Shown in pieces: positions 13,760 to 45,000 of a stretch of DNA of 64,000 nucleotides. A model generated the notes under the pieces. It worked only from the letters and a program-made list of their open reading frames with translations. It was not told where the DNA came from and ran no database searches. The stretch lies in assembly GCA_964019335.1 (NCBI GenBank), contig OZ025725.1:124001-188000 (forward strand). The letters are read 5' to 3'. The first letter of the stretch is position 1; each line of letters starts with the position of its first letter. The stretch comes from Diplonema japonicum (lineage: Eukaryota > Protista > Euglenozoa: Diplonemea). Both the position numbers and the translations under genes were made by a program.

Positions 13760-13790
<31 letters not shown>

Positions 13791-19949: not shown

Positions 19950-20903
19950 GAAGAAGAAGAAAAAAAAAAATTTTTTTTTGAAATGTATTATACATATGGG
20001 TTGAAGTGTGTGTGTTTTTCTTTTTTTTTTATTTTTTTTTTATTCAGCCCGATGGAACAAAATAAAAAAAAAAAAGAAAAGAGAAAAAGAAAAAAAGAAA
20101 AGAAAAAAAAAAACTCGGGGAGAAGTTTCCCTAAAAAATAAAGGAACAGCAAAAGAAAAAAAAATAAGGAATTTTTTTGGGGGGGTATTTTTTTTTTTTT
20201 ATGTTTATTGTTCTCTCTTTTCGCGGATCACAAAAGCGACCCTCGCCACCCTCCCTCTCGCAAAGCTTCCCCCCTTTTTTTATTCCTATATTTCTTTTTT
20301 TTTTCTTCTTCTTTTCTTTTTTTTTTTTTTTAATTTCCACGGTGCGAGGTACAAATGCAAAACTGCAAAATGAACGAAAAAAAAAAACGAGAATTTAATT
20401 TGAGGAACCAAAAAAAAGGGGGGAGAGGGAGAAATAAAGAATAAAAAAAAAAACTGAGCAAAAAAAAAAAAGTTTTTTTTTCTCTTCGAATTAGCTATAA
20501 ATATAGAAATGTGCCCCAAGACCGAAAGGGAGAAAAAAAAAAAAAAAAAAGGCGCACTTAAACTACATACCTCTACCATTACTTTTCTGTCTTTCTCCCC
20601 CCCCAACTCCCACCCTTGAATGAGGGCCTCTGTCTCTCGTCACCCTTTCCCATTCAAATACAGGATAAGAAAAAAAAAAACAAAAACAAACAAAAAAAAA
20701 GAAGAAGAAACAAAAAAAAAATGTATCAATCTTTCTTTTTTTATTTTTTTTTTCCTTTCCCCCCCAATTTTTTTTATTTTTCTCCTTGTACTTTCAACCC
20801 ACCAATTCTTTTTTTTATCTCCCCTGTCCACCCAACAAAAAAAAAAAAAATCTCACAGAAAAAAAGAAAAAAAAAAAGAAAGAAAAGGCCTTGGATAAAG
20901 GCA

Positions 20904-27068: not shown

Positions 27069-30000
27069 ATGGAAGGCCAGCCACGTTTCGGAGGCCAAGT
27101 CGGGATATATAAGTCGGAGGGGAAAGAAGACGAAAGAGGATGGAAGGACAAGCTGGGTGTGAAGAAGCAAGCAAGCTTTTCAAAGCCAGGTGTGGAGGAG
27201 GGAAAGGCCGAGGGGATCGCGATGATGGGCGGGAAGAACGCGTGGCAACAGTTTGTGGACGATGAAGGGAGGGTTTTCTTCCACAACGCCGCCACGGAAG
27301 AAACATCGTGGACCCTGCCTGGAACCGACGCGGAAGAACAACAAAATGCAAAGAAGTGGAATCGGTACCGAGACCCCTCTGGGACCGCGTACTATGCTAA
27401 CACCACGACCAACGAAACAACATGGGACAGGCCCTTGAGCTTTGCAACCGCCACTCCTCTTACCGAGCCCAATGGTATCCTCCCTGGATCCACAAACACT
27501 TCTTTTGGGAACCTTTCTGACGGCGAACTCGATCTTGACCTTTCTGCTTTGGAAAGCCCTCGGGCTCCCGAAGAAACTCGTCCGCCTATTCAGCGTGCGG
27601 AAGATATCAACCTCGAAGACCTAGATCTGGACGTTGATGAGAAAGCGGAGGACGATTTTCTAGCGAACGACTTGGATCTTGACAGTGATGAGAAAGTGGA
27701 GGAACATGATTTTTTAGCACAGATTGAAGACGATCTTGCGGACGGGAAAAAAGAAGAAGAGGATGAGCTGCTCGTGGTGCCTCGGTCGCCCGCCTACGAA
27801 CTGCCGGCCTTCGCCACCGCACTTCTCCAACCATCATCGTCGAAACGGTTCAAGAAGCGTGAGCTCGGATCCGGGTTTTCTACGTTTTACGACATGCGCG
27901 AGGCACGCCGAGCGGCCGTGGAAAAAACCAAGCCTGTAAAACCCGTCCTCCAGCTTCCCATGACGTGCTGCGCCAAAAAACTCGGCGGAACCCTGAACAG
28001 GGAGTGGAACAAGAAATGGTTGGCGCTCACCAACACGGAGCTCTCCTTTGCAGAGGATGAGACAGGCAGCGCAAACCGAAAGATTGTTCCGCTAGAAAGC
28101 GTAACATCCGTCTCTACACTGAGCGACTCAGTGCACGGAAGGCAATTCGTCTTCCAGATTAAAGTGACGAACCAAAAGGACAAAGTCTTCCAAGCATCAT
28201 CCGCTGCCCTCCGAGACGAGTGGATCGCAGCGCTCCTTCAGCTCAAAAAAGAAGCTAGTACTGCCGCTCAGATGTTCGATGCATCTAAAATGGGCGAAAC
28301 CTGGGGCGACATGCCCGGCGAATTCATGTTCAAACCTCGCTCAGAGAAGATCGACCCGTCCTTCACTCGAGAAGTCACGAGCTTCTTCCGCTCCGACACC
28401 TGGGCAGCCAGGTGGGTTTGGACCTCGAAAGGCATTCTGAGCTACGCAAAAAAGAAAGGCGGTGCATCTGAAAAGGAGATCCGCCTCGATTCCATCGTCT
28501 ACTGTGGGGTGTGTATTTTTTTCTCTTTTTTTTTTCCTTTTTTTTCTTTGCTTGAACAAGAAAAACATTACTTTATTTCACTCTTCGAACGCGTCTGTCT
28601 GTCTGCCAGCCAAAGCTGTTTTTTGTTAAGATGCCATTCACTGCTCTTCTAAATTTCTGACTGTTTTCATTATCTTGTTTAGTCCAATTCACCTGGCATA
28701 TGAGACAATATCGCCTGGCAGAGAGAGACGGGTTTGCGGAATCGGATTCTGTCCCAGCATGATCTCTGCAACACTCATGGTACATTCTACGCAGTCAGAT
28801 CGTCCATGTTTACATGTATATGATACACATGAGCCGTATGGGGTGTCCGTCTGATTGTGCGTATTCCGGACCGCGCCATTGACACATGCATATGCCACAG
28901 GGTTGGTGCAAGCCTGTGCACACACGATAAACTCCAAGTCCATGTGGTTTAATGGAAGAGCGCTTGACTACGAAAAGTGGTTCATTTATTTTTCACGATA
29001 AGTGGAAAGAAAAGAAAAATGGGCAAGAAGAAAGACAAGCACAAGGAGAAGGCAAAGCCGGAAGGGAACGGGGCCAGCACGCAGCTGGCCCAGTCCAAGG
29101 CCAGGGAGGAGCGGCGGGTGGAGAGGATGCTCCGCAGCGCGGGAGCAGCCGGGGAGCTGGGGCAGCTCCTGACACCGGAGCACCGGGAGAAGATGACGGG
29201 GGTGGTCACCGTAATTGACCTCCTCACGCCCGACGCCGCCGCCGCTACAGCCGGCCCAGCGACACCTGTCGCCTCCACCCCGACCGGCTCCGTCAAAAGG
29301 CCGGTTTCGCCTGACGCCAGCGTCGCCACCCCGACCTCCAGCAAAAAAGCTAGGAGGAAGGCCGCCAGAGCCGCGCGCGCTGACGCTGCCGCCGAAGCCG
29401 CACACATAGCTGACGCCACACACCCCCTCGAAGCCGCACGCACTGCGGCCGACGTCGAACTCGCGGGAATCGCTGCTGATTTGGAAGCTGCACGCGAGTC
29501 GGCCGACGTGGTAGCTGCAGAAATAGCTGCTAAGATGAAGGCTGCGCAGGAGGTGGCTGATGCTGCTGTTGTCAAAATGGCAGCCGAGACGGAAGCTGCA
29601 CGCGTGGCTGGTGTGGAGGCTGCTCGCAGAGCAGTCGAGGCAGAGGAGAAGGCTCTGCGCGAGCGGTCTACTGCACGACTTGCGGCAGAGGAGAAGGAGG
29701 CTGCGCGTGCTGCGGCCGAGATGAAAGCAGCCGAGGAGAAGAAGGCTACAGCCGCAGCCGCTGCAGCCGAGAAGAAGAAAGCCGCAGCCGCCGCCGCCGC
29801 CGAGAAGAAGGCCGACGCCGAGAAGAAAGCAGCAGCCGCCGCCGCCGCCGAGAAGAAGGCCGCAGCCGCCGCCGCCGCCGAGGAGAAGGCCGCCGCCGAG
29901 AAGAAAGCCGCAGCCGCCGCCGCCGCCGCCGAGAAGAAGGCCGCTGCCGACGCCGCCAGGAAGAAAGCTGCAGCCGCCGCCGCCGAGAAGGAGACCGCAG

Positions 30001-33000
30001 CCGCAGCCGCCGCCGCCGAGGAGAAGAAGAAGGTCGCAGCCACCGCCGCCGCCGAAAAGGAAGCCGCCGCAGCCGCTGCCAAAAAGGAGGAAGCTTTGAG
30101 GTTGGCGGCCGCCAAGAAGGCAGATGCCCAGAAGGTCGAGGACGAAGCAGTCGCGAACGCTTCCGCCAACGCGTCAACAGACCAAGGCACGCTCCTCCTC
30201 AGCTCAGACTCTGACACCAGCTCTGGCCCTGAGGAGATGGAGGACGACCCTGCCCCTGCCCCTTCCACAACCCCGCGATGGGACCTGGTGCCAGACACAT
30301 GGGACGCCCCGATCTACACTAACGTGTCCCCCCCGACGGAAACATCCCGCGCTGTCATTGCGCTCGACGATCCCTCCGAAATGGGGGTCGTGTGCTCCGC
30401 GTTACCTACGGCATCCATCACCTTTGTCCTTATGACAGAGGTCCCCGGTGTCACCACCCCCAGCGAGATTGTCATGGTCTCTGGGTCGCGCGCAGTGAAC
30501 AGGAGGGTCCACGTCTCCACGTTCGGGCTGGACCCCCCCACCTACACCCCGCCTTCCACCTTCAACAGCGGATCGGAGGTCGTCTACGTCTGTGTCAGTG
30601 CAGACAGCCTGAAGGAGGCGAAGGCCAGGGTCCTGGAGCTCGCCAAGGCTCAGGGCGCGGTGGTGGAGGATCGTGCGGTCTTCCGCCCAAGGAAGTTCGG
30701 TGAGGAGGAACCGCGGGCGAGGCACTGGACCCACGAGGTGGGGCTGCGCCTGCAAGCAGCACACGTCCACGCCGTCCTGCGCCGGTCCGGGGACGGGTGC
30801 ATGATCCGGACGACGGAGAGACGCGGGGGGTACGCTTATGTACCCATCGTGGCGGAAGGGAGGGCGGATGCCTTTCGGATTGCGGGGACGCTGGGTGGGT
30901 TGTCTCTCGGGGTGGCGCACCGTAAGGGATGGACTGTGCGGTGCCTACCGGAGACGGAACAGCGGCTCCGGGAAACCCTCGCAAAACTGCGTACGAAGCG
31001 CAAGTTTTTGCTCACCGGGGCCCCGCCGTCCATCACCAGGGCGGCCTTCGATGAAATGATGGACCACATCGGCTGGAAACCATCCTCCGTCCTGCGGCGC
31101 ACGCAGACGATGTTCCAGGGCACGAGGCAACTCGTGTTCTTCATCGTCGTCGACAGCCCGCCCCCGAAGTCCAGGACGTGGCTCCTTGGGGGGCGCCTTG
31201 TCTGCCTCCGTGATGCGGACGACCACCCGACCGTCAAGCCGCCCCCTCTCATCAACAGGACGACACCTGCATCTGCACCTGCGCTTGCAACGTCCTCGAC
31301 CCCGGCACCCACATCTTCTCATGTACCTGCACCTGCGCCTACACCTGTACCTGACCCGGCACCTGTATCGGCGTCGACACCCTCGGAGACTGGCCCTGCG
31401 GTGAAAGCAACTGGGCTTCCTCCCACCAGCCCGTGGGCGTCCATACCGAGCTCGGTGGCTCCCCCCCAGCTCGACACTGTGACGTCCCCTACACCGCCCC
31501 GCAACGTGTCTGGGGGAAACAAGGAGGGGGTCCCTTCCGGGTCGCCTGAGGTCGCCGCTCTCACTGAGCTCGTCGCCACGCTGAAGGAGTCGATCGTCGG
31601 GCTGCAGAGGACGATCGACTCTCAGCAGGAGATGATCTCCGATCTGCGGACGACGCTCCGCCTCCTCCTGCCGCAGGCGGCCACGCTGACGACGGGAACG
31701 GCAGTGCCGCGGGACCCTACACCGGGGGCGACGACGACACACGACAGTGTCTGGAAAGGGAAGGGGAAGGGGAAGAAGGGGGCTCCTCCTCTCGCTACGA
31801 CCTCTGAGGCTGCGGTGACGAACCTGGGTACGAGGGGGCGGGCCAGGTCGTTCGCGGAGACCAAAGATCTCTTCACCAATGGGGTCAAGGGGCGCTCTGC
31901 CTCCATGGGTCCATCCAATTGAAGGGGCCCCGCAGAACAGGGGGAGCAGCAGATCTACGACCATGCTCCCTCTCCTAGTCTCCCTCGCATCCTCCCCAGG
32001 AGACTCCTACCTCTCTGTTTCTTCACCGACTTTTCTGCACTGATCCCCACCCTACTCGGGAGGATGTCCGTCAGGGACCTGCTGGGGCTGCTTGGGCTGG
32101 TCGAAACAAACCCTGGCCCACCCAAGAAGCTGCCGCCCCCGTCGCCTAAGGGTCTCAAGGTTGTCTCGTGGAACTGCAACGGCCTCGTTGCGAAATGGAC
32201 CGTCGTATCTCGCCATGCTGACTTCTTGTCGCTGGACATCATCATGATACAGGAGACGCACCTGAGGGAAGGGCACGACACGCCACACCTGCCTGGGTAC
32301 AGGTCATACAGGAGGGATCGGTTGACACCGGTGACTGACGGCACTGCGACGAGGGGTGGTGGTATTGTCACGTATGTCCGCGACGATCTTGCCTCGGAGG
32401 AGGTTCCGCACGTACTCCCGGCTGGGGACTGTGTCACTGAGAGACTGGATGTGAGGATCTCCTGCGAGAAGCGTGAGCCGATCACTCTCTCCAACGTTTA
32501 CCTTACACCGGTAAGCGCGAGCAGAGGCACGAGGGACCCTGAGTACCTGCGGCCTGGCAGCCTTCCCATGGGGAAGAACACAGTCATAGCGGGTGACTTC
32601 AATGCTCACCACAGCTCCTGGGACGCCACGGTGACGACGCCGAACGAGAGGGGGAACGTGGTCAGGGACTGGCTGGACACCCACGGGTACACCGTCTACA
32701 ACGACCGCAACGAACCGACGAGGGACTCGTCACGACACGTTCTGGACCTGGTTGTGGGGCGCTGCGCGAAGCTTGAGCCGAAGACGCTGGGCACGTGGGG
32801 CTCCGATCATAGTCCCGTATCCTTTCACCTGCCTCTTGAGGACGTCTACCGTTCGGAGCGCCCCTTCCCCACCTGGAATTTCAAAAAAGCCAGATGGGAT
32901 GACTACACTGCTGCTGTTGCCCGCCTGCTTGCTGGTGTTGACACGGCGGCTCCGATTGACTCTGTCACGAAGGGGTTTACACAAGCCCTTTTGACTGCGG

Positions 33001-36000
33001 CGAACGACCACATTCCCCTCTGTGGGATGCGACGTGGCCCGACCCCCTGGTGGACTGCTGAGCTCGAGGACGCCTTCGAAGAGCGGAACACCCTGCGCGA
33101 ACTCCTGCTTCAAGAGGCGGACGTGGTGGTGGAGGAGTACAGGGCGAAGGTGAAGGAAGTCAACCGACTCCTTGACGAGACGAAGCGTGAGGCATGGGGA
33201 AGGATGGCGGCCGACCTCAGCCGGAGCAAGGACCTCGGGGCTGCGTTCAGAGCGGTGAAGAAGCTGGACGGCAGGCACCGAAAGACACACCTTCCTGTAC
33301 TCGAGGGAAGATTTGTGTCGGACAAGGCGAAGGCCGACCGGCTGGGGGCGCACTTCGCTAAGCTCTACGGCAGGCGTGGTGACGGGAACTCGAAGGACGC
33401 CGCTCCTTCTGCAAGCAGACTCGGGTGTCAAGCCTTCACCGTGGACGACCTCACCCGCGGCCTGAGAAGGATGAAGACGCGCAGCGCGGCCGGGGAAGAC
33501 GGAATCTTCTCGGAGATGCTCCTACACCTGAACACGGACTCCCTCGGTGTCCTCCTTCTACTCCTCAATCGCTCCTGGCTGATGGGTGTCGTCCCCGGTG
33601 CCTGGAAGAAGGGAGTGATCGTCCCGGTACCGAAACCTGGAAAAGATGCGACTCTCTTGGCTTCCTACCGGCCGATCTGCCTGACCAGCTGCCTCTGCAA
33701 GCTGCTGGAGAGGATGATCGAGGAGAGGCTCACGTTTCTTCTTGACGCGGACGGGACGGGAGTCGAGGGACTCCACGACAGCCAGGCTGGTTTCAGACGC
33801 GGCCGCTCCACGGAGGAGCAGGTGGCAACCCTCACTGAGTGCATGTCGAGGAACAAAGACGATCGACGTCTCTCGGCCGCTCTGCTGTTCGACTTCTCTT
33901 CTGCCTTCGACCTGGTGCCCCATGGTGCCCTGCTGGACAAGATGCGAGGGAAGGGTCTCCCCGAACCCTTCGTGGAGTGGACGCGGTCCTTTCTATGCGG
34001 CCGTACTGCTGCGGTCACGATTGGACGGTCGAGGGGGTCGACGACGAAGGTGCGACGGGGTGTCCCCCAGGGCTCTGTCTTGGGTCCCATCCTGTACACC
34101 ATCTACGTCGACGAACTCGCCAGGAGACTGGAGGGACTGGCGGACGTCTCGGTGCTCTACGCCGACGACGTGGCGGTTGTGATCTCCTCTGGACAAGGGG
34201 ACGTGGCTGGGCTGGAGCGGAAGGCGCAGGCAGTGGTGGATGCGGTTGAGGACTGGTGCAGGGAGCGTGACATGCTGCTGAGCACGTCCAAGACGCAGGC
34301 AGTCTGCGTCCCCCCCCAGAAACGTCTCGGGGTCTACTTCACTTCGTCACGAGTCCCCCTTCAGCCAGGTGCCTTCCAGAACCCGCTCTTCGGCCTGGGG
34401 GTGAACGCCGATGGCACGATCTCCGGGGACCAGGAGCTGGCGGGCCTTCAGGTTGTGGAGGCGGGTGGTGTGCGGATCCGCTGCGTGCGGGACATGCATG
34501 CAGCCGTGCGACGGCCCGACGTGGACTACGTTGCGGCCCGTCCCCTGCCTCTGTCTGAACACGCGAGGTACCTTGGGGTAACGGTGGACTCTGGGCTCAC
34601 GTTCGGTGAACACGCACAGGACATCCTACGGCGGGCCAGCAAAAGGCTGAGGGTGCTGAAGCTCTTGTCCGGCACGTCCTGGGGCAGCAAGAGGGACACT
34701 CTGCGGTCTCTCTACGTTACGTACATCCTCCCGCTGCTGCGCTACTGCATGGGGGTCTACTACAGCAGGCTCGATGATGTCGGGAGGAAGGACCTGGCTG
34801 GGCTTCACCAGGAGGCGGCGGTGCTGATCACGGGCTGCTGGAGTGGCTCCGGAGGGTACAAGCTCCTAGCTGAGGCAGGACTGCTTCCCCTCGAAAGAAT
34901 GGCTGAGGGTGCTGCGGCGACGATGACGGCGAAGGCCTTCTGCTGGCAGTCTTCCCCGGTTCACAGGGAGACGGTCAAGCTGAAGCAGGCGAACAGGCTG
35001 GGGTGTGGGTGGCTGCGCTCTGGCTACCAAGCACTGCGTCGATGCGGGTTGGAACCAAAGGTGCACTTCGAGTACCTGTCGGCTACGCCCCTGGCGGCCC
35101 CGTGGCAGACAGGCATGGTCGACTTCAGGACTGACCTCCCCGGCGGGGTCACGCGATCGTCGCCAGACGCGGACAGGCGGAAGGCGGCCGAGGCTGCTCT
35201 TGCGGCTCTCCCCCCGGGCATCCATGCCTACACGGATGGCTCGGTTGTACAGGTCGGACAGAAGGCGAAAGGTGGCTCTGGGGTTTATCTGCAGCTGCCT
35301 CCCCCCCTGACCCCTGTGTCTGTGTGCCATGGCGTCAACGACTTCTGTTCATCTTTTCGGGCAGAGGGCATGGCTGTGAAAACGGCGCTGGATATGGTGG
35401 CTACCCTCCGAAAAACACACCCTTCGCTGGCGAAGTCCCCGCTGTCGATCTGCACCGACTCCCTCTCCCTCGTCGAGCAGCTGCGAGCTGGCCCAACGCG
35501 ACAGAGGGAGAAGCTCGACCACCAGACGTGGAGCCGGCTGGTGTCCGCGGTGCGCACGCAGGGGACACCGGTGGTCCTCCAGTTTGTGCCCTCCCACTGT
35601 GGGGTGGACGGGAACGAGAAGGCTGACGCTCTAGCCGGGGAGGGAACGAAGCGGAAGCAGGACAGGCCCTCCCTTGACTACCGATCAGTGAGGGCCCTGG
35701 TGCGACGGTGGGTGGTGCGGAGGTCCGCGGAGCTCATAACATCCCTAGCCCACAACTACGCGGTGGCGACCGAGCTTCGGTCTGCGCACTTCCCCCTTGG
35801 CTTCCCCAGACAAGCTGAAACGGTCATCTCGCGGCTGCGGATTGGTCACTCGGCTCTCTTCTTCGGCTTCCTGCAGACTGCTGGCCCGAACAGGAAGCAC
35901 AAGGGTGTGCTCCGGTGCCCAGCCTGCCACGCAGCACCGATGTCCAGGGAGCATGTTGTCGGTGGGTGCCCTGTGATCGGGAGGGGGGCGATCGACACTC

Positions 36001-38537
36001 CTGCTGGTACTCCCTCCCTAGCCTTCTCCCTGTCGAGACGCGTGACCCAGATCTACGACCTCATTGTTGAGTCTGGCCTGCTCGCCTGGTCACGCTCCGG
36101 ACTGTTCACCTCGCCATCATCCCTGGCGTCTACAGACGTCACTGCACCTTCAAACGTGCCGCCTCCTCCTCCGGTCTCTCTTGACGCCGGTCCCGCGGCC
36201 CCCGTGCTGCGCTAAGGGATCGCCCCGTGTGTGTGTGTTAAATGGAATGTTGTGTTTCCCACTTTCCTTTCCCTTCCTTCTCCTTCCTCTCACTGTTTCC
36301 CATTTCCCCTTTTATTTCACACTCACCAATGATTCGCTCAATAGGAGCAATACCTCCCTGGGGGGCTTTCCGCCGGAGGTTCCAGCCAAAGAAGGACATC
36401 CAGCTGGAAGGTAGGCCCCCGTTTTTCTCTCACTTGACTGAGGGAATAATGTAATTCAGCCCTCTTCGGCTGTCCCAAAGCAGAGCACGGGTTGGTGGGG
36501 GACCAGGGCTCCTCCTGCTTGCAGAAGCCTGGTCCTTTGCCCTCCCTATTTCCCCATGGTTTCCCTTCACCTTTTTTTTTCCCTTTTCTCAGGTGTTGCT
36601 CTCCATGGCGGCCCTGCATTGGTATTTTGAAAAAAAAAAAAAAAAAAAAGGGGGTCTCCAAGTCCGTGTGGCTCAATGGAAGAGCGCTTGACTACGAATC
36701 AAGCGGTTGCAGGTTCGAGTCCTGCCTCGGATGTTTTTTTATCAACACATTTTTTTACAGGTTCTTGACAATGATGTAGCAAAGGAAATGGAAGCCCCTA
36801 AGCACTACTGGTCAAAAATATTCGAAATACAAACGGACGGGAGAAAGGTGATGTTTGCAACGGAGACGAAAGCATCACGCGATAAGGTTTGGAGAACAAA
36901 AACAACAACAAAAAAAAGAGGGGGTGAATAACAAGAAAAGAAAGGAAGGGAAAAAAAAAAGAAAAAAAAAACAGTGGGTAGCATACATCAACGATGCAAT
37001 GTATAGCACATCGTCTGTGGTGGCCGTGACAAAAGAGAAGAAGAATGATTGGATGTCTTCTGATTGGTCGGAAGACAGATGGTCTCAATGGGAAAAAGAT
37101 GCATTAGAATTTTGGGAAGAAGACCTGCCAGACGCAGAAATAGACATAGATATGGTATGCAAACTCGAAGCACTCAAATCAAAACCCCCACAGGTAACAA
37201 TGAATTTCGTTTACGATGAAGAAGAGTGGCCGACGCTTCCCATCTGGATGAAGCGTGCCGGCGGAACAGATGAGGATGTATACCTGGCGAGTGCCGTGAA
37301 GGATGGGAGCGGGCATTTAAACTTGAACATGATGCCGATGAGCTTGAAAATTCTAGGTTTTGGGAACGAATGCAGCACGCAAACAAAGAACCAAATCAAA
37401 ATCGGTTCCCGCATCGTCAGTGTAAACAACCGCCCTGTTTCGTGGATAGGAAACTATCGGCAAGCGCTTCGCAGTGTCTCAGAGGCGGGTGTTGTCCTTG
37501 GGTTGAAACCCCCTAGGCTTGACGAGGAGCGTTTCGAGTCAAAGGAGTACGAGACAATTATCTCAATGCCGATGACACGGGGACAGCATGCCCCAGACCC
37601 GCTTGTGGAATGCATGGAGTTCACCCCACAGGAAATGCGGGAAAAACGGAAGATTGCAAAAGAAAAACGAAAGACAAAGGAACGCGAGGCACACACAGCA
37701 CAGCAGGAAAAGCGTGTTCAAAAAGCAGGGGAAGCCAAGGAGATCCACGAGAAGACCGCCGCAAAGGTGTCGTACGCAGCTCACGCCGTCCACGCAGGTG
37801 CGAAAAGCGCGATAAGAGATGCAAAGAAGAAAGCGGATCAGAAGTTTACAGGTGCGCTGTCTGGTCGGATCAATGACAGGTTCAAAGAACATTTTCCAGA
37901 GTACTGCGATGAAGGGCTGATATGCGACTATAAGTGTTTGATGAGATTCGAACCTTCGGGTGGGGAACGTGAAGTCATCCAACCACGTGACCTCGATGCC
38001 CACTTCATGCTGACAAAGTCAGCGATATTTTACTACTCCGGCGGGAGGTCATCGGAAGCGTTCCGGGGATGGATACCTTTATCCCGTGTCGTGAGTATTC
38101 AGTTTGGCGAACTAGTCACCGACGAGGACACGAACAGGACAAAGTACGCCACGATTGATTGGGTTGAAAATGATATCTCAAAATCAGACTGCCTTCAAAT
38201 ATTCACCTCTGATCACCATCGCTACGACTTCTTCAAGGTCCGCGCCATCAGCCTCGAGAAGATCAAAAAGGTCGACGGTGTGACGGCCATCGGTGGGCTC
38301 TATTCCTATCTCGATATCTGTTGGAGAGACCTCATAGAAGTGCCTTGTCCTTCCTATGAGTACACACTCCCCGGCGAAGCATTTTCCCCCCTCCTTAAAG
38401 ACCCTCCTAAACGGGAACCGAACAAGCAAGGTGTTCGTACCTGTCGAGCATACAGACGCCTTCTTGAAGACACCTGCGCTGACGTTCTCACTGCGAAGCC
38501 TATTACGCTGGAACCCATCTTGGAGTCGATTGAATAA
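27069..38537 (+). CDS. WW-WW-PH-PH-(PDZ-like)-(GRAM-like) protein; exons 27069-28508, 36761-36886, 36975-38537
   Basis: Two WW motifs and a complete PH; second PH restored in phase across intron 28509-36760 (SIVYCG|VLDND...FEIQTDGRKVMFATETKASRDK|WVAYINDA). Confidence 0.8.
28932..28974 (+). pseudogene. Duplicated 6-nt leader plus 5' half of tRNA-Arg(ACG) at the 5' junction of element E1
   Basis: 40/43 identity to 36656-36698; ends at the end of the anticodon loop. Confidence 0.85.
29019..31922 (+). CDS. E1 ORF1 (Ala/Lys/Glu repeat, central domain, Pro-rich linker, coiled coil)
   Basis: Open from ATG 29019 to TGA 31920-31922; strongly similar to E2 ORF1. Confidence 0.85.
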   Translation: MGKKKDKHKEKAKPEGNGASTQLAQSKAREERRVERMLRSAGAAGELGQLLTPEHREKMTGVVTVIDLLTPDAAAATAGPATPVASTPTGSVKRPVSPDASVATPTSSKKARRKAARAARADAAAEAAHIADATHPLEAARTAADVELAGIAADLEAARESADVVAAEIAAKMKAAQEVADAAVVKMAAETEAARVAGVEAARRAVEAEEKALRERSTARLAAEEKEAARAAAEMKAAEEKKATAAAAAAEKKKAAAAAAAEKKADAEKKAAAAAAAEKKAAAAAAAEEKAAAEKKAAAAAAAAEKKAAADAARKKAAAAAAEKETAAAAAAAEEKKKVAATAAAEKEAAAAAAKKEEALRLAAAKKADAQKVEDEAVANASANASTDQGTLLLSSDSDTSSGPEEMEDDPAPAPSTTPRWDLVPDTWDAPIYTNVSPPTETSRAVIALDDPSEMGVVCSALPTASITFVLMTEVPGVTTPSEIVMVSGSRAVNRRVHVSTFGLDPPTYTPPSTFNSGSEVVYVCVSADSLKEAKARVLELAKAQGAVVEDRAVFRPRKFGEEEPRARHWTHEVGLRLQAAHVHAVLRRSGDGCMIRTTERRGGYAYVPIVAEGRADAFRIAGTLGGLSLGVAHRKGWTVRCLPETEQRLRETLAKLRTKRKFLLTGAPPSITRAAFDEMMDHIGWKPSSVLRRTQTMFQGTRQLVFFIVVDSPPPKSRTWLLGGRLVCLRDADDHPTVKPPPLINRTTPASAPALATSSTPAPTSSHVPAPAPTPVPDPAPVSASTPSETGPAVKATGLPPTSPWASIPSSVAPPQLDTVTSPTPPRNVSGGNKEGVPSGSPEVAALTELVATLKESIVGLQRTIDSQQEMISDLRTTLRLLLPQAATLTTGTAVPRDPTPGATTTHDSVWKGKGKGKKGAPPLATTSEAAVTNLGTRGRARSFAETKDLFTNGVKGRSASMGPSN
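29740..30120 (+). repeat. Coding minisatellite (GCC)n-GAGAAGAAG encoding AAAAAEKK
   Basis: Directly visible tandem units; absent from E2 ORF1. Confidence 0.85.
31923..36215 (+). CDS. E1 ORF2: linker, 2A-like motif, APE, RT, RNase H, CCHC (first Met 32064)
   Basis: LVETNPGP; SWNCNG, IQET, GDFNAH, SDH; YRPICL, QAGFR, FDFSSAFD, GVPQGSVLGP, YADD; YTDGS, TDS, VPSHCG..GNE.AD; CPAC...H...C. Confidence 0.93.
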   Translation, partial: RGPAEQGEQQIYDHAPSPSLPRILPRRLLPLCFFTDFSALIPTLLGRMSVRDLLGLLGLVETNPGPPKKLPPPSPKGLKVVSWNCNGLVAKWTVVSRHADFLSLDIIMIQETHLREGHDTPHLPGYRSYRRDRLTPVTDGTATRGGGIVTYVRDDLASEEVPHVLPAGDCVTERLDVRISCEKREPITLSNVYLTPVSASRGTRDPEYLRPGSLPMGKNTVIAGDFNAHHSSWDATVTTPNERGNVVRDWLDTHGYTVYNDRNEPTRDSSRHVLDLVVGRCAKLEPKTLGTWGSDHSPVSFHLPLEDVYRSERPFPTWNFKKARWDDYTAAVARLLAGVDTAAPIDSVTKGFTQALLTAANDHIPLCGMRRGPTPWWTAELEDAFEERNTLRELLLQEADVVVEEYRAKVKEVNRLLDETKREAWGRMAADLSRSKDLGAAFRAVKKLDGRHRKTHLPVLEGRFVSDKAKADRLGAHFAKLYGRRGDGNSKDAAPSASRLGCQAFTVDDLTRGLRRMKTRSAAGEDGIFSEMLLHLNTDSLGVLLLLLNRSWLMGVVPGAWKKGVIVPVPKPGKDATLLASYRPICLTSCLCKLLERMIEERLTFLLDADGTGVEGLHDSQAGFRRGRSTEEQVATLTECMSRNKDDRRLSAALLFDFSSAFDLVPHGALLDKMRGKGLPEPFVEWTRSFLCGRTAAVTIGRSRGSTTKVRRGVPQGSVLGPILYTIYVDELARRLEGLADVSVLYADDVAVVISSGQGDVAGLERKAQAVVDAVEDWCRERDMLLSTSKTQAVCVPPQKRLGVYFTSSRVPLQPGAFQNPLFGLGVNADGTISGDQELAGLQVVEAGGVRIRCVRDMHAAVRRPDVDYVAARPLPLSEHARYLGVTVDSGLTFGEHAQDILRRASKRLRVLKLLSGTSWGSKRDTLRSLYVTYILPLLRYCMGVYYSRLDDVGRKDLAGLHQEAAVLITGCWSGSGGYKLLAEAGLLPLERMAEGAAATMTAKAFCWQSSPVHRETVKLKQANRLGCGWLRSGYQALRRCGLEPKVHFEYLSATPLAAPWQTGMVDFRTDLPGGVTRSSPDADRRKAAEAALAALPPGIHAYTDGSVVQVGQKAKGGSGVYLQLPPPLTPVSVCHGVNDFCSSFRAEGMAVKTALDMVATLRKTHPSLAKSPLSICTDSLSLVEQLRAGPTRQREKLDHQTWSRLVSAVRTQGTPVVLQFVPSHCGVDGNEKADALAGEGTKRKQDRPSLDYRSVRALVRRWVVRRSAELITSLAHNYAVATELRSAHFPLGFPRQAETVISRLRIGHSALFFGFLQTAGPNRKHKGVLRCPACHAAPMSREHVVGGCPVIGRGAIDTPAGTPSLAFSLSRRVTQIYDLIVESGLLAWSRSGLFTSPSSLASTDVTAPSNVPPPPPVSLDAGPAAPVLR
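36662..36733 (+). tRNA. tRNA-Arg(ACG), intronic
   Basis: Cloverleaf: GTCCGTG/CTCGGAT, D arm GCTC/GAGC, anticodon arm CTTGA-CTACGAA-TCAAG, T arm GCAGG-TTCGAGT-CCTGC. Confidence 0.93.
36734..36740 (+). terminator. Pol III oligo(T) terminator, 20 nt upstream of a host 3' splice site
   Basis: T7 directly after the tRNA; acceptor AG at 36759-36760. Confidence 0.75.
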
Positions 38538-39015: not shown

Positions 39016-42000
39016 ATGACAAAATGGCAACGGCGGGTGGTGTCATCAGCTGCCGAGGAGGCGCCGAGAAGACTGAGGAGAGTAGAACCTCACGCATGGC
39101 AGGCAACGGTGAAAATGGCACCGAAAGAAAAACCACCCCTCGTGGGGGCGCTGGAAAAATTCACGAAACTCGGGATGCTGGCTAACAGATCAGGGATGTC
39201 AGATGCGATACGGAAAAAAGTGGTGCAACAAGAAATAGAACGGCGGAAAATTTTAGAAGAAATCAGGAGGATCTCTGCGGAGAAGGTCAAAAAGGAGCTG
39301 GAAAGAAAAAGACAAGCTGAGGAGGAACGGATCCGAAAGAAGGAAGAACGCGCGGCGCAACTAGAAGCAGACCGTGTTCGACGTGAAGAAGAACGGAAAA
39401 TCCGAGAAACGCAAGAACTCCGACGCAAAGCCGACTTCGAAGCCAACAAAGAAACACCACAAGAAATCGATCCCGAGGAGGAAAAAAGAATGCGGCAGAT
39501 CGACGCAGCCGACAGAGAAAAGAGAAACGAAGCAAGGGAAGCACACAGGCGAGCGTTAGAAGAACGGCAACGAAACAAAATGGCGGCAGCACAAGCCGAC
39601 AGAGAAGCAAGGCAGCTTCCTGAACAAACAACAGGCGACTGGAGACAGGGTGAAGAAGTTGAGTTTGACGAAGACGACGACCACGACCACACACCAGAAC
39701 CGGCAACCTTCACCATTGTATGTTGTGGGTTTCTTTTTTCTTTTTCTTACATTTTTCTTTTTCTTTTTTTGCAGGCGGAGAAAATGAAACAATTTACAAC
39801 TTCTAAAATATTGAAACCAAAAACACCGCCGAAGCTGGAAGCGAAAGCTGAAGCGGCAGTGCAAGCGGTTTCTGAAGATGGGAAAGTGTTCCAAGACGAG
39901 CTTTCAGACATTTCACTGTTGAGTCACATCGCTAACACCGCAGAAATAGAAGACTTTGACACCGACACCGACATTGCTCTTGTGGACGAGTCGATGCTCG
40001 TCCGACGAACGGAGCTGAAAAACGATGAAAAAGAGAAAACGCTCCCGGAACTGAGCCCAACATTGAGGATGAGAATGCTTGCGTCGGAGTACGACGATCT
40101 CCCAGGGGGTCCGAAGGGACCCAGCAAGACGTACAAGCAATGGTATGGCTTTTCTTTTCTGTTGTGATTCACAACACAGGAAAAACGATTTCGGGGAAAC
40201 TCCAACCGACGACATCAAGTGGGTCATTGCGTCCGAAGGGTTCGTTGGAGGAATCCAGTGCCTGAACGATTTCCACACTGCAAAGCTCAAAGTGACCGAC
40301 GAACAACGTGCCGCTCTGATTGAGAGCTCGCTCAAGAAGGTTGCGATTTCCGAGAGGAAGTTCGCATTTGAAACCATCAAGGGGGTGGAACAAACCTTCG
40401 CTGACTCACCGCCAGGTGAAGCCACTCTTGAAATGTACTTCAAGCTTGCAGGGAAAATAGGGTATTTCAAAGACAACACAAATAATAATAATACAGGCAA
40501 CCCAGTACTGTCAAGTCAGCTTGGGAAAAGTACTGCACATTCCCACCTGAAAGCCCATCTGTCTACTTCTCAGCCATCCAAGCACTCACCGTCGTTCCAA
40601 CGAAGATACATTTCCACCACCACCCGATCATCGACAACCTGGATGCGGCAGGCAAAATCTTCGATTCTTACTGTCAAGAGTTTGAGTCTTTCTTAAATTC
40701 TACGGATATTATTTCTGATGTATGTGGGTTCGGGTTTGTTTGCTTTGCTTTTTTCTTTGATTTGGTGATAACGTAATTTTTATAAAGGTCCAGTAAGTAC
40801 TTTTTTTTTTTTGACTAGAGTTCCAAATGAAAATTCTCCTCCGTTTGTCTTCTTCTTTTAATTGGGACTGTTCTCAAGACCTTGATCCTGTGATCGGCAG
40901 GGGCCTACTGGCACTCCCTCCCTGTTGAGACGCGTGCTTATTCACCTCGTCCCCTGACGTCACTGCACCATCAAACGTGCCTCCCCCTCCTCCGGTCTCG
41001 GAATGAAGTAAATTCTTAAAATCTGAGAAATCGTCTCTTATTATTAGAAGCGGCTAATGCCTCGAGGGGTGCTTTTATTATATTATGAAAAGAGCGTGGG
41101 TCCGGGCAAGAATGTGTTCTCTGGGACTGCTCAGATTTGCGCGTGACTCCTGCTCACAGCGTAACCGCTCCTATTGTTGCCCAGCCCCCTGAGATGTGTT
41201 AAATTTTGTGTGTATGAAAAGAAATAAAATGTTCTTTACTAGAGGGGGGCGGCACAAAATTCCGACAGATCCTGTTGTGATTTTGTACCGCGCACTGTGA
41301 AAAAAGATATATAGAAATAAAGATTTGAAAACTAAAAGTGTGAAAAACAACAAAAGTGTGCTGATGCACGCTCACGGTGCGTCATCCGCCCGCCTCTTCG
41401 CACGTCCCAGAGCACATTCCTTCAGTAATCGAAGATTACTTATCATTTTACTTCAGGGAGCAGCGGACCAGGACCCCTCGACCAATGGCTCAGTAACAGA
41501 GATTGCTTTTCACGAGTCACTTTCGAACACTACTCTTGGTTGGAAGTGATATCCCTTTCCCCTTACGTGGGAGATGTAAAGAGGGTGCACAAGATGCAGT
41601 CCGGTTTCAGGAAGGGGCATTCCACAGAAGAGAACGTCCTGCAAGTGACGACGAAACTGAACCGCATCAGAGACGATGAGTTCTGCGGTGGACTATTGCT
41701 CTTCGACCTGAAGGGCGCCTTCGACAGCTTCTAGGAAGAATCTGACCAGGTACGAGACGCTCTTACCGAGGAGGACTTGGTCGGAATGGAGGGCAGACCA
41801 ACGAAAAAGCTACAGTTTCTGTACTTTATTGAAAAGAAAAGAAACATGTCGACCTCCAACAAGAAGAAAAAGAGGCCCGCTCACCACAAGTCCAGGACGG
41901 AAGAAATCCTGGAGAAAGCCCGCGGTGAGCGGGTAAAGGACAACGCCGCCGCCAGGGCGAAGCGCACGCGCGAGGAGGTGGAGAGGAAGCGCGCAGAGGG

Positions 42001-45000
42001 GGTCACGCCGGTGGTGACACCCTCCCCCGGGCAAGGGAAGAAGGCGGCCAGAAGGGCCAGACAGAAGGCAGCAGCTGCTGACGCTGCCACCGCCGCCGCT
42101 TCGGGCTCCGACGACTCTGTCGTCTTAATTAGCGAGTCGCCGGGCGTTGTCACCTCGTTCACGGTCGACACGCCAGAGGTCAGGAGGGCGAGGATGAGGA
42201 CTGCTGCCGCCGACACCACTGCTCCTGCACCTGCTGCTGCCGACTCCCCTGCTCCTGCGCCTGCTCCAGCCTCTACTGCTGCCGTGTGGTCTACTGCCGT
42301 CCTTACTGCCGCTGCCTGCGACACCGCCCTCCCCATGTCGGACTCTGACACCGACGAGAAGAACACTGCCCCCGCTCCCGCACCGGCCCCGGAGCCTCAC
42401 TGGGATCTGGTCCCCGACACGTGGGACGCCCCCATCTACACCAACACTGCTCCCCCTGAGGAGGTGCCCCGCGCCGTCGTCGCTCTCGACGACCTCCAGC
42501 AGGTGGACGCGATTCGCACTGCGAGGCCCACGGCCTCCCTGACCTTCGTCCTCTTGACGGAGGTTGCCGGTTCGACCACCCCATGCACCGTCATCGTACT
42601 CGCCGGCCAGCGTGTCGTGCACAAGGCCGTGCACACCTTCTCGGTCGGGTCGAACCCCCTCCTACACCCCACTCGCTTCTTTTGATGGCGGCTCTGAGGT
42701 AGTGTACGTCAGCGTGAAAGCTGACAGCGTGAACGCGGCGAAGGCCAGGGTTCGGGACCTCGTCGCGACCCAGGGCGTGGTGGAGGAGCAGGCGATCTTC
42801 CGCCCGAAGAAGATCGACGGGAACGAGCCGCGGGCACGGCACTGGAGCCACGAGGTGGGCCTGCGGCTCCCGGCGGCATCCGTCCATGCGGTACTCCGGG
42901 CCTCGGGCGACGGCTGCATGGTCAGGACGACCGAGCGGCGCGGGGGGTACACCTACGTGCCCATCGTAGCGGAGGGGAGGGCGGAGGCCTTCCAGCTGGC
43001 GAAGGCACTGGGCGGGTTGTCCCTGGGGGTGGCCCATCGCAAGGGTTGGACCGTGAGGTGCCTGCCGGAGACGGAGCAGCGTCTGAGGGAGGCCCTCGCC
43101 AAGCAGAGGACAAAGCGTCGGTACCTGCTCACCGGAGCCCCGCTGTCTGTTACCAGGGCAGCCTTCGACGGGATGATGGACCACATCGGTTGGAAGCCGT
43201 CGTCCGACGCTCTGACACGGCGTTCCAGGGCATGAGGCAACTCGTGTTCTTCATCGTCGCCGACGCCCTGCCCCCCAAGGCCAGGACATGGCTCTTCGGC
43301 TCTCGTCTCGTTCGACTGCACGACGCGGAAGACCACCCGAGCGTCACGCTCCCGCCCCGCACCAACAAGAAGGCTCCACCCGCGGCTCGGACGCCGGTTG
43401 CGGCAACCACGGCCCAGACGCCGACGCCGGCCCCTGGCCCCACGGTGCAGTCCACAGGGCTGCCGAGCACCAATCCGTGGTCATCTCCACCGAGCTCGGT
43501 TGCCCCTCCGCCACTTGGCACTGTGACTCCGGTCTCCTCTGCGGCTTCCCCGACCACGACACCTCCCCGTGACTCCCAGAAGAAGAATCCCGCACCGGAA
43601 CCTGAGGTCCCGGCGCTCCTCGCGCTGATCCAGTCGATGCAGGCGACCATCGACGGTCTGCAGGCGACGGTCCGCGACCTCCAGGAGAAGATGGCAGCGT
43701 CACTTGGCGCGCCGGCGCCATCTGCAGACGGTGCTGGGCGGACGGCAGTTGCTGGGAAGGGCAAAGGCGGCAAGGCTGGGTCCAAGGCAGGGACGAAGGG
43801 GCACCAGGCGCAGGGCGTAAGCACGCCAGGCCCCTACCCGACATCGACGGAGCAAGGGGGCGGAAGGGGACGCGCCCAGTCGCTGGCTGGCGACTCTGCT
43901 ACCCCCAACGGGGTCGGCCGTGGAAGGGCAGCCTCTGTGGGCCCGGCCCCCGCCCCTGCCAATTGAAGGGGTCCCGCTGAGCAGGGGGGGCGGCAGATCG
44001 ACGACCACGCCCCCTCTCCTGGTCTCCCGCGCATACAGCCGAGGAGACACCTTCCACATCACTTGTACGACGTCCTCCCTTCCTTGATCCCTTCCTTACT
44101 TGAACGGATGTCGGCCAGGGACCTGCTGGGGCTGCTTGGGCTGGTTGAGACGAACCCCGGTCCACCTAAGAAGCTCCCACCCCCGAAGCCGAAGGGACTC
44201 AGGGTCCTGTCCTGGAACTGCAACGGTCTTGCCGCCAAGTGGGCAACCGTGTCCTACCACGCTGTCCTACTGACGCTGGATATCATTATGATCCAGGAGA
44301 CACACCTTAGGGAGGGGCATGAGACACCATACCTGCCTGGATACACGTCCTACAGGAGGGACCGCACAACACCGGTGACGGACGGCTCTGCGACGAGAGG
44401 CGGTGGTGTCATCACGTATGTCCGTGACTGCCTTGCCTCGGAGGAAGCTCCTTTCGTACTCCCTGAAGGTGACAGTGTCACTGAGCGATTAGACGTGAGG
44501 ATCTCCTGTGTGAAGCGCGTCCCGGTCACCCTCTCCAACGTGTACCTCACGCCTGTGAGTATAAGCAGAGGAACAAGGGACCCCGAGTACCTACGGCCGG
44601 GCAGCCTACCTGCGGGGAAGAACACGATCGTTGCTGGCGACTTCAACGCACACCACAGCTCTTGGGATGCCAAGGTGACAACGCCCAACGAAAGGGGGAA
44701 CGTGGTCAGGGACTGGCTTGACACCCACGGCTACACGGTCTACAACAACCGTGACGAGCCGACGCGGGACTCACCGCCACGCGTTCTGGACCTGGTGGTG
44801 GGACGTTGTGCGGAACTGGAGCCGAGGACGTTGGGGACGTGGGGCTCTGATCACAGCCCGGTTTCCTTCCGCTTGCCGCTTGAGGACGCCTACTGCTCGG
44901 AGCGCCCCTGCCCTACCTGGAACTTCAAAAAGGCCAGGTGGGACGACTTCTCCGCGGTCGCTGCCGCCCTTCTGACCAAGATCGACACGAAGGGTCACAT

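Follow-up and report, generated by a model that had tools for sequence, protein, structure and literature searches.

The translation of ORF2 from a bicistronic LINE RNA is a long-standing open question. To our knowledge, programmed stop-codon read-through has not been described in Euglenozoa, except in lineages with changed genetic codes. Among LINEs, 2A peptides have been associated with elements that lack an ORF1 (PMC3894237), and the trypanosome elements L1Tc and ingi lack an ORF1 and carry the 5' Pr77 promoter/ribozyme hallmark (PMC3894237, PMC5814959). Two LINE families, here named E1 and E2, were found in the window (the whole stretch of 64,000 nucleotides analysed), and both combine an ORF1, an in-frame stop, a translated-looking linker and a 2A-like peptide. 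They are young, transcribed and present in a trans-splicing protist. Neither the Pr77 hallmark nor the single long ORF without ORF1 that characterize the ingi/L1Tc clade was found in them: Pr77 was undetectable at E1 and E2, whose 5' end is either (GAAAA)n or a spliced leader, with no Rfam ribozyme family.

Structure, copies and transcripts of E1 and E2

E1 and E2 are APE-RT-RNase H non-LTR retrotransposons, each with a large ORF1 (Table 1). The Pfam domains of E1 ORF2 are PF03372/PF14529 (residues 34-252), PF00078 (522-757) and PF00075 (RNase H, 1054-1195), which places an AP endonuclease followed by a reverse transcriptase within a single ORF, and the element has no LTRs, a poly(A) at its 3' end and copies dispersed over many contigs. 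The E1 ORF1 can be aligned end to end with those of E2 and of E3, a sister family with a homologous ORF1. Homologues of ORF1 beyond its own transcript were not detected among 5.8 billion proteins, and the single-sequence model of its core fold had a pLDDT of 34 and was unusable. Comparison of the core with the Atlas gave weak RRM-like leads only (0.76-0.81).

Table 1. Coordinates of the E1 and E2 features within the window
Feature	Position	Strand	Description
E1 ORF1	29019..31922 (28977/29019..31922)	+	967 aa and a TGA; no match in Pfam
E1 ORF1 regions	30276-31229 (conserved central domain)	+	N-terminal half A/K/E-rich
Conserved stop context	31915..31933	+	CC-AAT-TGA-AGG-GGY-CCC-GC, common to E1 and E2
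E1 in-frame TGA	31920..31922	+	between ORF1 and ORF2
E1 linker	31923..32063	+	47 codons, no in-frame ATG or stop; pyrimidine-rich
E1 hairpin	31939..31973	+	10-bp stem 31939-31948 / 31964-31973, 15-nt loop
Second predicted hairpin	31977..32005	+	AGUCUCC / GGAGACU; stem the same in E1 and E2
First ATG and 2A-like peptide	32064..32120	+	MSVRDLLGLLGLVETNPG/P; predicted skip GGC 32115-32117 / CCA 32118-32120
30-nt stretch of E1/E2 identity	32072..32101	+	codons RDLLGLLGLV; longest in 31917-32400; unexplained
E1 ORF2	32064..36215	+	AP endonuclease, reverse transcriptase, RNase H, C-terminal Cys/His motif; stop TAA
E1 3' UTR	36216..36650	+	end pyrimidine-rich; poly(A) 36630-36650
Spliced-leader sequence at E2 copy 5' end	41797..41831	+	(AAAAG)n comes next, then the ORF1 ATG (41846)
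E2 ORF1	41846..43966	+	three frame segments in window copy; near-junction part intact in other copies
E2 in-frame TGA	43964..43966	+	between ORF1 and ORF2
E2 linker	43967..44107	+	length equal to E1 linker
E2 hairpin	43983..44017	+	stem 43983-43992 / 44008-44017
E2 ORF2	44108..48106	+	begins with MSARDLLGLLGLVETNPGP (44108-44164)

The ORF1-ORF2 junction is present in at least 39 copies for E1 and at least 19 for E2, near-identical within each family, and the two are young multi-copy families. The 5' ends of the copies contain a variable (GAAAA)n. The window copy of E2 is damaged, its ORF1 being split and the C-terminus of its ORF2 shifted, and E2 copies elsewhere in the genome are open both upstream and downstream of the junction. 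Upstream of the stop the frame was open to the locus edge in 20/30 fetched E1 loci and 10/20 fetched E2 loci; downstream of it, in 28/30 and 14/20, respectively. These families are best explained as APE-type LINEs that are active or were so until recently.

The E1 ORF1 is 99% identical to the transcriptome protein P0038 and ORF2 is 100% identical to P0001; the ORF1 and ORF2 proteins of the public transcriptome trace to one Trinity gene. None of the runs on record as RNA carried the element. Contigs of four public runs span the junction unchanged, a result of small weight as evidence. One run, X1, comes from a related organism and contains an ORF2 of 96% identity. One E2 copy starts with the spliced leader and has both ORFs behind it. 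The same leader heads full-length copies from two other LINE families, and the genome contains 217 occurrences of its 3' half, compared with 0 for the control.

The stop codon, the linker and the 2A-like peptide

An earlier note, made from the sequence alone, had described ORF1 and ORF2 of both families as lying in one frame separated by a single TGA, followed by 47 stop-free codons before the first Met of ORF2, by a 10-bp stem with two compensatory A-U to G-C pairs and by the motif LLGLVETNPGP. All of these were found at the positions given there, and the linker peptides that it quoted were exact. At the nucleotide level, E1 and E2 become similar again 5 nt upstream of the stop (blastn match from query position 216). 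The in-frame TGA was kept in 59/59 junction copies of the 62.5-Mb genome, counted as matches to the junction pattern with two mismatches at most, as well as in 50/50 fetched loci, and was unchanged in the Logan contigs spanning the E1 junction; ORF2 lies in the frame of ORF1, behind a stop that is kept among relatives. The context AAU-UGA-AGG-GGY matches no classical leaky context (UAG-CAA-UYA, UGA-CGG/CUA, UAG-G plus structure) of those listed in PMC13517186. Long-range pairing of the stop region amounted to 9 bp in E2 and only 4 bp in E1, and is therefore not conserved. A candidate further family with a similar stop context, represented by the motif TGAAGGGGGGTAGCAGAGCAGGG, was rejected, all of its 12 copies lying outside LINE junctions.

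The E1 and E2 linkers differ by 0 indels over 141 nt at 72% identity, unlike the ORF1 tail immediately upstream, where several indels separate the families. The linker dN/dS was 0.20 in the ORF1/ORF2 frame and 1.18 and 1.32 in the other two frames, a pattern that mirrors the adjacent ORF2 (0.13 in frame vs 1.6 and 2.4 off-frame). Amino-acid-identical codons numbered 30/47, against 23.3 +/- 2.3 expected (simulation P=0.003), in a comparison of E1 with E2 that involves two lineages only. A dN/dS comparison across copies had been proposed in the earlier note, and the values found here amount to a coding signature specific to the ORF1/ORF2 frame. Synonymous divergence between the families reaches about half of the sites (pS 0.50 in ORF2 and 0.57 in the linker). 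Only frame 0 of the linker is stop-free in both families, which by itself is weak evidence (P about 0.43). Because of the low in-frame dN/dS and the single open frame, the linker is probably translated; its coding signature, drawn from two lineages, lies past the stop and ahead of any start codon.

An Rfam search of the linker and of the leaders of other families did not detect a ribozyme, IRES or read-through element. It returned only miRNA-like matches at the hairpin, which are due to chance, and one match below threshold that covers the NPGP codons. The linker was also considered as a possible Pr77/HDV-ribozyme hallmark, and this was rejected: when the linker was locally aligned with the Pr77-like leaders from families 3 and 4, the scores stayed within the range of shuffles.

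In the 10-bp stem behind the stop, 100% of cells were paired across six distinct copy variants. A G-U intermediate occurs in one E1 copy beside the two A-U to G-C double changes, which count as two events between two lineages (P about 0.01, a rough estimate). The hairpin is present in the MFE of both families, and its folding energy showed no excess over dinucleotide shuffles (z from -1.2 to +0.3). It begins at +20, counted from the U of UGA, while the read-through stimulators that have been tested begin at +9 to +16 (PMC13517186; PMC3159437). The role of read-through stimulator that had been proposed for this stem is at best weakly supported, in view of its distance from the stop and its ordinary energy. 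The stem of the second predicted hairpin, being invariant between E1 and E2, is uninformative.

The 2A-like peptide is, as judged from the codons of both families, under purifying selection: every E1/E2 difference in VETNPGPPKKLPPP is synonymous, and in VETNPGPP synonymous differences affect 6/8 codons with the amino acids unchanged. Numbered as for F2A (bioRxiv 10.64898/2026.09.24.754024), the peptide reads M1-S-V-R-D5-L6-L7-G-L9-L-G11-L-V13-E14-T-N16-P17-G18-P19 and matches the FMDV 2A at 11/19 positions (D5, L6, L7, L9, G11, V13, E14, N16, P17, G18 and P19). The upstream hydrophobic tract of class A (FDLLKL type) is present as RDLLGL at positions 4-9, the same in E1 and E2. Compared with the core D(V/I)ExNPGP, LVETNPGP agrees at 7/8 positions, with Leu replacing Asp12, and Leu is not among the residues allowed there even by the widened core (D/G/C/N)(V/I)ExNPGP (bioRxiv 10.64898/2026.09.24.754024). 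When F2A and P2A were scanned by mutation, every substitution of Asp12 was inactive (same source), and STR-32_SP, a natural LINE 2A with Gln in place of Asp12, is active (PMC3708506). Of the earlier suggestion of StopGo at this site, purifying selection on the motif is supported, whereas activity is supported weakly at best, with Leu at the position where the F2A and P2A scans tolerated no change. Past NPG/P, the ORF2 protein of E1 and E2 would begin 19 residues before the WNCN motif.

Production of the ORF2 protein

The full-length mRNA of E1 and E2 would carry both ORFs, and one source RNA or more would also have had the spliced leader. The majority of ribosomes would terminate at the UGA of ORF1, yielding the ORF1 protein, and a minority would decode the UGA by a near-cognate tRNA and continue into the 47-codon linker, giving a product that spans the junction N-X-RGPAEQGEQQIYDHAPSPSLPR. 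Through the 2A-like peptide, the protein with APE, RT and RNase H would then be set free, or at the minimum produced, after NPG/P, and the outcome would be a high ratio of ORF1 to ORF2 protein from a single RNA. We assign a probability of about 0.5 to this main reading, in which ORF2 is produced on one RNA by UGA read-through, translation of the linker and a 2A-like peptide. Read-through at the UGA, its efficiency, the StopGo activity of the Leu12 peptide and the role of the hairpin are each points that we infer, and a read-through cassette in E1 and E2 is plausible. The earlier proposal of read-through is favored by the frame-specific coding signature of the linker, the absence of indels and the kept stop, and gains little, if anything, from the stem or from the UGA-AGG context.

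More tentatively, two recoding events may be chained on each mRNA, with UGA read-through setting the protein ratio and the Leu12 2A freeing the enzyme. The LINEs of this genome appear to express ORF2 by continuing upstream translation, as in element A and family 3, and the 2A may act as an insulator, giving the ORF2 protein a fixed N-terminus whatever precedes it. Element A has the in-frame arrangement ORF1-CAA-UAG-CAA-UUA-ORF2, kept between subfamilies at 85% identity. In LINE family 3, ORF2 has a 2A and no ATG, and overlaps ORF1 in the +1 frame. P0162, a distant relative, has an ORF1-sized region joined to APE-RT by 2A peptides within a single ORF. The nearest relatives of ORF2, P0002 and P0039, are transcriptome proteins without DNA. 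An ORF1-stop-2A arrangement was not found in the 55 metagenome loci scanned (those matching into the APE N-terminus, from 80 returned marine/soil loci, at no more than 45% identity), which have a canonical 2A within a single ORF or no 2A; the cassette was thus seen in no relative outside this genome.

An independent start of ORF2 at AUG 32064 (44108 in E2), by reinitiation 141 nt past the UGA or from a separate SL-spliced ORF2 mRNA, is a serious though rather unlikely alternative, according to which the linker serves as 5' UTR or as a spacer, and the 2A-like peptide is no more than a short leader at the N-terminus, a role that has been proposed in ORF1-less LINEs. The two families share the position of this ATG, and no other ATG intervenes between it and the candidate acceptor AGs CCCCAG/GAG and CAG/CCGAG/GAG; the pyrimidine-rich linker (61% in E1), with its conserved AG dinucleotides, could be an SL acceptor region in a trans-splicing organism. 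However, the E2 tract is interrupted by purines, no AG occurs in E2 from its last pyrimidine run to the ATG, and the contigs of the four public runs, which drop minor forms, contain no leader joined inside the linker. In E3 the two ORFs meet at a stop-start junction, TAG-CC-ATG, in a different frame; this family has no 2A, and its ORF2 opens at a Met of its own that lies 15 residues ahead of the WNCN motif. A Met located 14-18 residues before G/P in L062-L064, P0002 and P0039 also hints at a role as start codon. SART1 is an established case of termination-reinitiation and human L1 a proposed one, yet after a 967-codon ORF reinitiation is considered very inefficient (PMC3894237), and an out-of-frame ATG inside the E1 linker (31963) would hinder scanning to 32064. 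Such a start would also leave unexplained the frame-specific synonymous excess of the linker, its lack of indels and its stop-free frame 0. That signature would be accounted for if the linker were translated by internal entry at a non-AUG start near its beginning (IRES-like or structure-guided), with the hairpins as part of the entry site and their role independent of the distance to the stop; ATG-less open leaders of about 125 codons precede the 2A in L061 and L164, and IRES-like translation has been suggested for L1Tc (PMC5814959). We regard this as improbable: neither the frame shared by ORF1 and ORF2 in both families nor the onset of conservation just before the stop would be explained, the Rfam search gave no match to a known IRES family, and the structures are energetically ordinary.

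Two further explanations have very little in their favor. The arrangement could be functionless, with the TGA as a tolerated defect, the elements mobilised in trans and the likeness of E1 and E2 due to shared ancestry, as the many damaged copies, including the E2 of the window, might suggest; this is very improbable given that stop, frame and peptide are all kept with about half of the synonymous sites differing, that 39 E1 and 19 E2 junctions are near-identical, with many loci open upstream or downstream of the stop, and that ORF1 and ORF2 proteins occur in the transcriptome. The UGA could also be read, under a changed genetic code or by a dedicated system, as selenocysteine or some other amino acid; this has the slightest probability of all the explanations weighed. 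An in-frame UGA with a hairpin nearby does recall some selenoprotein mRNAs (PMC3159437), and a structured 3' UTR had been remarked on earlier. Against it, TGA terminates many long ORFs of the window, among them the ORF2 of E2 and those of host genes, and neither a tRNA-Sec nor a suppressor tRNA was found within the window. SECIS was absent from 36200-36760 (E up to 10) and from the whole window (gathering score), and for the E1 3' UTR the only Rfam match was the tRNA next to it.

Comparison with known recoding systems and LINEs

The gammaretrovirus gag-UAG-pol and alphavirus nsP3-UGA-nsP4 junctions likewise join a structural or abundant protein to a polymerase in one frame across a single stop, with conserved sequence 3' of the stop, a base-paired element downstream and a low fixed ratio of the downstream product. 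E1 and E2 differ from them in that the UGA-AGG-GGY context is outside the Beier-Grimm types and that a simple 10-bp stem begins at +20. They are also LINEs of a euglenozoan, in which release would occur through a 2A-like peptide and not a protease, and in which read-through is putative.

L1Tc and ingi of trypanosomes agree with E1 and E2 in domain order (APE, RT, RNase H, Cys motif), in having a 2A-type peptide directly before the APE and in their euglenozoan host. Unlike them, E1 and E2 have a 967-aa ORF1 conserved in E1, E2 and E3, a (GAAAA)n 5' UTR and Leu in place of the critical Asp; if the Leu12 peptide works, the known sequence limits of StopGo would be widened. An ORF1 together with a 2A in ORF2 also occurs in CR1-26_BF, CR1-53_BF and CR1-1_LG (Odon et al. 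2013), which are rare exceptions to the association of 2A with ORF1 loss. These are metazoan elements of the CR1 clade, and an in-frame single stop followed by a translated linker is undescribed for them in the literature compared.

The UAAUG coupling of SART1 and the reinitiation of human L1 also concern a bicistronic LINE RNA whose ORF2 depends on the ribosomes that translate ORF1, and in SART1 a downstream structure matters as well. In those elements translation begins anew at a start codon on or close to the stop, whereas E1 and E2 have 141 translated-looking nt before the first AUG; it is the E3 junction, TAG-CC-ATG, that does resemble SART1.

Junctions of E1 and E2 and their transcripts

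Two related non-LTR retrotransposons, E1 and E2, carry ORF1 and ORF2 in the same frame, separated by the TGA that ends ORF1; downstream of this stop, 47 codons precede the first in-frame ATG. The peptide beginning there, MS(V/A)RDLLGLLGLVETNPGP, adjoins the endonuclease domain directly. ORF2 of E1 encodes AP-endonuclease, reverse-transcriptase and RNase H domains, and no Pfam family was matched by its ORF1 (967 aa). The earlier note had described these junctions from the sequence, and every detail of that description was recovered in place.

Coordinates of the elements and other features (window positions unless a contig is named; G000 is the source genome, C-numbers its contigs and L-numbers fetched loci)
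Feature	Position	E2 position	Remark
E1 non-LTR retrotransposon	about 29004-36650
E2 non-LTR retrotransposon		about 41797-48500
Spliced leader at start of E2		41797-41831	...ACCAACGAAAAAGCTACAGTTTCTGTACTTTATTG
5' UTR (GAAAA)n repeat	29004-29018	41832-41845	variable length, also in L070-L079
ORF1-terminal TGA	31920-31922	43964-43966
First in-frame ATG after TGA	32064	44108
Second hairpin	31977-32005		invariant, hence uninformative
Identical 30-nt run	32072-32101	44116-44145	codons RDLLGLLGLV
Hairpin, both families	32084-32135		predicted, not significant
tRNA-like 5' half	28944-28975		GTGGTTTAATGGAAGAGCGCTTGACTACGAA, just before E1 5' end
tRNA-Arg(ACG) gene	36662-36733		11 nt past E1 poly(A)
Element A (LINE)	5464-7683		span as noted (L080-L083)
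Element A ORF1	5464-6894		stop 6892-6894
GH81 glycosyl hydrolase ORF	12297-15374
WD40/TPR (IFT-like) ORF	20616-23729
U2 snRNA short match	50259-50350
E3 family	G000:C102:204823-208725		L066
LINE family 3	G000:C17:633300-635400		L164
LINE family 3	G000:C20:670700-672800		L165

A search of the 62.5-Mb genome (132 contigs) found at least 39 E1 and at least 19 E2 junctions with the exact stop context, and one more whose mismatch leaves the stop itself intact. Loss of the TGA was not seen among junction copies within two mismatches of the pattern, and the TGA was kept in 50/50 fetched loci. Twenty of the 30 E1 loci were open across all 573 fetched upstream codons and 28 across 659 downstream codons; over the same spans, 10/20 E2 loci were open upstream and 14/20 downstream. 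Because identity between copies of the same family is 97-100%, the copies were counted as two lineages rather than 58 observations. Head-to-tail arrangements are frequent, with one copy following the poly(A) of another within a few bases (L070-L079), which could reflect either arrays or targeting of A-rich sites. The motif TGAAGGGGGGTAGCAGAGCAGGG occurs 12 times in the genome in unrelated surroundings (L067, L068 and 10 other places), against 0 for its control.

The organism uses a spliced leader, which we take to be closest to the diplonemid leader. It heads the window's E2 copy, and in two further LINE families the full-length copies begin with ACCAACGATTCTAAAGCTACAGTTTCTGTACTTTATTG. The leader 3' half occurs 217 times in the genome versus 0 for the reversed control; leader-headed retroposed copies were observed, and the 3'-half matches often lie near contig ends. 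In a public transcriptome, ORF1 (P0038, isoform i3, second ORF) and ORF2 (P0001, isoform i6) belong to one Trinity gene, which, together with the leader-headed E2 copy, fits a bicistronic RNA. Assembled contigs crossing the junction, from public runs with no RNA label on record, keep the TGA unchanged. No leader was found joined inside the linker in these contigs, which cannot reveal minor RNA forms.

Linker, hairpin and 2A-like peptide

The E1 and E2 linkers (141 nt between the TGA and the first ATG) align with zero gaps and 40 differences. The dN/dS ratio (Nei-Gojobori) is 0.20 in the ORF1/ORF2 frame, with 20.5 synonymous changes over 36 sites and 19.5 non-synonymous over 105, versus 1.18 and 1.32 in the two alternative frames. 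For the initial 112 codons of ORF2 the ratio was 0.13 in their own frame, with 1.6 and 2.4 in the shifted frames, and synonymous divergence was similar (pS: linker 0.57, ORF2 0.50). When 40 substitutions were placed randomly, retaining the observed transition share, 23.3 +/- 2.3 codons kept their amino acid, compared with 30 observed (P = 0.003). This frame is the sole stop-free one in both linkers, by itself weak evidence (P about 0.43). Directly upstream of the stop the ORF1 tails are homologous and indel-rich, and BLAST-detectable nucleotide similarity restarts 5 nt before the stop. Short of ribosomes translating the linker in frame with ORF1, this pattern would be difficult to account for. 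No in-frame ATG occurs in the linker, so the simplest source of such ribosomes would be UGA read-through.

Downstream of the stop, a 10-bp stem is present in the minimum-energy folds of both elements, and its pairing is complete throughout six distinct copy variants. As noted earlier, two pairs changed on both sides (A-U to G-C), one E1 copy showing a G-U intermediate; in both, the 5'-arm change is non-synonymous and its 3'-arm partner synonymous. In the first 81 nt, E2 has G/C at 8/29 sites that are A/T in E1, and from this rate the chance probability of two compensatory pairs is estimated near 0.01, for two events in two lineages. The structure is probably real. Its proposed role as a read-through stimulator is not supported: with the U of UGA as position +1, the stem begins at +20, outside the +9 to +16 of tested stimulators (PMC13517186), and none of the four folded segments exceeds dinucleotide shuffles in stability (z -1.2 to +0.3). 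Older surveys give stop-to-structure spacers of 6-12 nt (PMC3159437). The earlier interpretation, in which read-through sets the ORF1:ORF2 ratio, is partly supported.

The proposed 2A-like motif is present and matches FMDV 2A at D5, L6, L7, L9, G11, V13, E14, N16, P17, G18 and P19 (numbered from Met), including the hydrophobic DLL-x-L cluster. All E1/E2 differences in VETNPGPPKKLPPP are synonymous, indicating that the peptide is under selection. It overlaps the region's longest identical run, which has no synonymous change, although E1 and E2 differ at about half of the synonymous sites nearby. However, the critical Asp at position 12 of FMDV 2A is replaced by Leu. Deep mutational scanning of F2A and P2A found every D12 substitution inactive, and natural peptides widen the core to (D/G/C/N)(V/I)ExNPGP (bioRxiv 10.64898/2026.09.24.754024); by contrast, a LINE 2A from a sea urchin that carries Gln there was active when its upstream context was right (PMC3708506). 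We give activity of the Leu12 form about even odds.

Alternative routes to ORF2

The best reading, to which we give a probability of roughly 0.5, is that a minority of ribosomes would pass the UGA from ORF1 into the linker and continue through the 2A-like peptide into ORF2. Its main rival, a less likely but serious one, is that ORF2 starts independently at the conserved AUG, either through reinitiation or from an internally trans-spliced mRNA. Stop-start coupling is available to this lineage, as indicated by the sister family E3, whose ORF1 is homologous to those of E1 and E2 (the fetched copy has one stop within it): its junction is TAG-CC-ATG, with ORF2 beginning two bases past the ORF1 stop in another frame, without linker or 2A; this favours the rival. 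The same family also favours a processing role, since 15 residues separate its ORF2 Met from the WNCN motif and 19 separate the predicted post-2A N-terminus of E1 from that motif, which would make the 2A site the natural ORF2p N-terminus. Conserved AGs in a pyrimidine-rich linker make a separate trans-spliced ORF2 mRNA conceivable, although the E2 tract holds many purines.

Internal entry at a non-AUG codon is doubtful. A functionless defect is very improbable; the window's E2 copy is itself damaged, with ORF1 in three frame segments and a shifted ORF2 C-terminus. Selenocysteine decoding of the UGA is, if anything, still less probable, and TGA is an ordinary stop in this genome, terminating many long ORFs of the window, host genes included.

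Parallel junctions and known recoding devices

Other LINEs of this genome have comparable junctions. ORF1 of element A ends in CAA-TAG-CAA-TTA, an exact match to the leaky stop context of tobamovirus type. An AP-endonuclease domain in the same frame begins 28 codons after the stop, and a Met lies 8 codons after it. This junction is kept in an 85%-identical subfamily, upstream indels being only 3n. Full-length copies of family 3 start with a complete spliced leader; ORF1 ends GQY-TAA, and ORF2, in the +1 frame, overlaps it by 27 nt (GTA-AAA-AGG-AAG...), a candidate programmed frameshift, followed by about 125 ATG-free codons and the canonical CGDIEANPGP. In P0162, a distantly related database protein, an ORF1-sized region and APE-RT are joined by 2A peptides in a single ORF. 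Judging from these sequences, it seems a recurrent feature of these LINEs that ORF2 is expressed by continuing translation begun upstream.

A shorter family 3 copy (L061) begins exactly at GCCCTGGAAGCTGGGG, resembling the Pr77 start of L1Tc. Families 4-6 (L062, L063, L064, L166) share a block of ~110 nt, AATCCTGGCCGGCCCC...AGGGCCGGCCCCCCCC, upstream of MDILxCGDVExNPGP and preceded by an A-rich tract. An Rfam search of this block found nothing; possibly the block is a hallmark of the Pr77/HDV-ribozyme-like kind, here occurring outside trypanosomatids.

The E1/E2 cassette was not found in the protein and metagenome relatives examined outside this genome, and we found no description of an ORF1-stop-linker-2A-ORF2 layout in the literature on LINE 2A peptides. 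In LINEs, 2A has been linked to ORF1 loss, with only three exceptions named and Ingi-clade elements lacking ORF1 (PMC3894237, PMC3708506). Being young, transcribed and present in many copies, the elements make the cassette well suited to experiment. As read here, it would be a new variation on known recoding devices, in a LINE.
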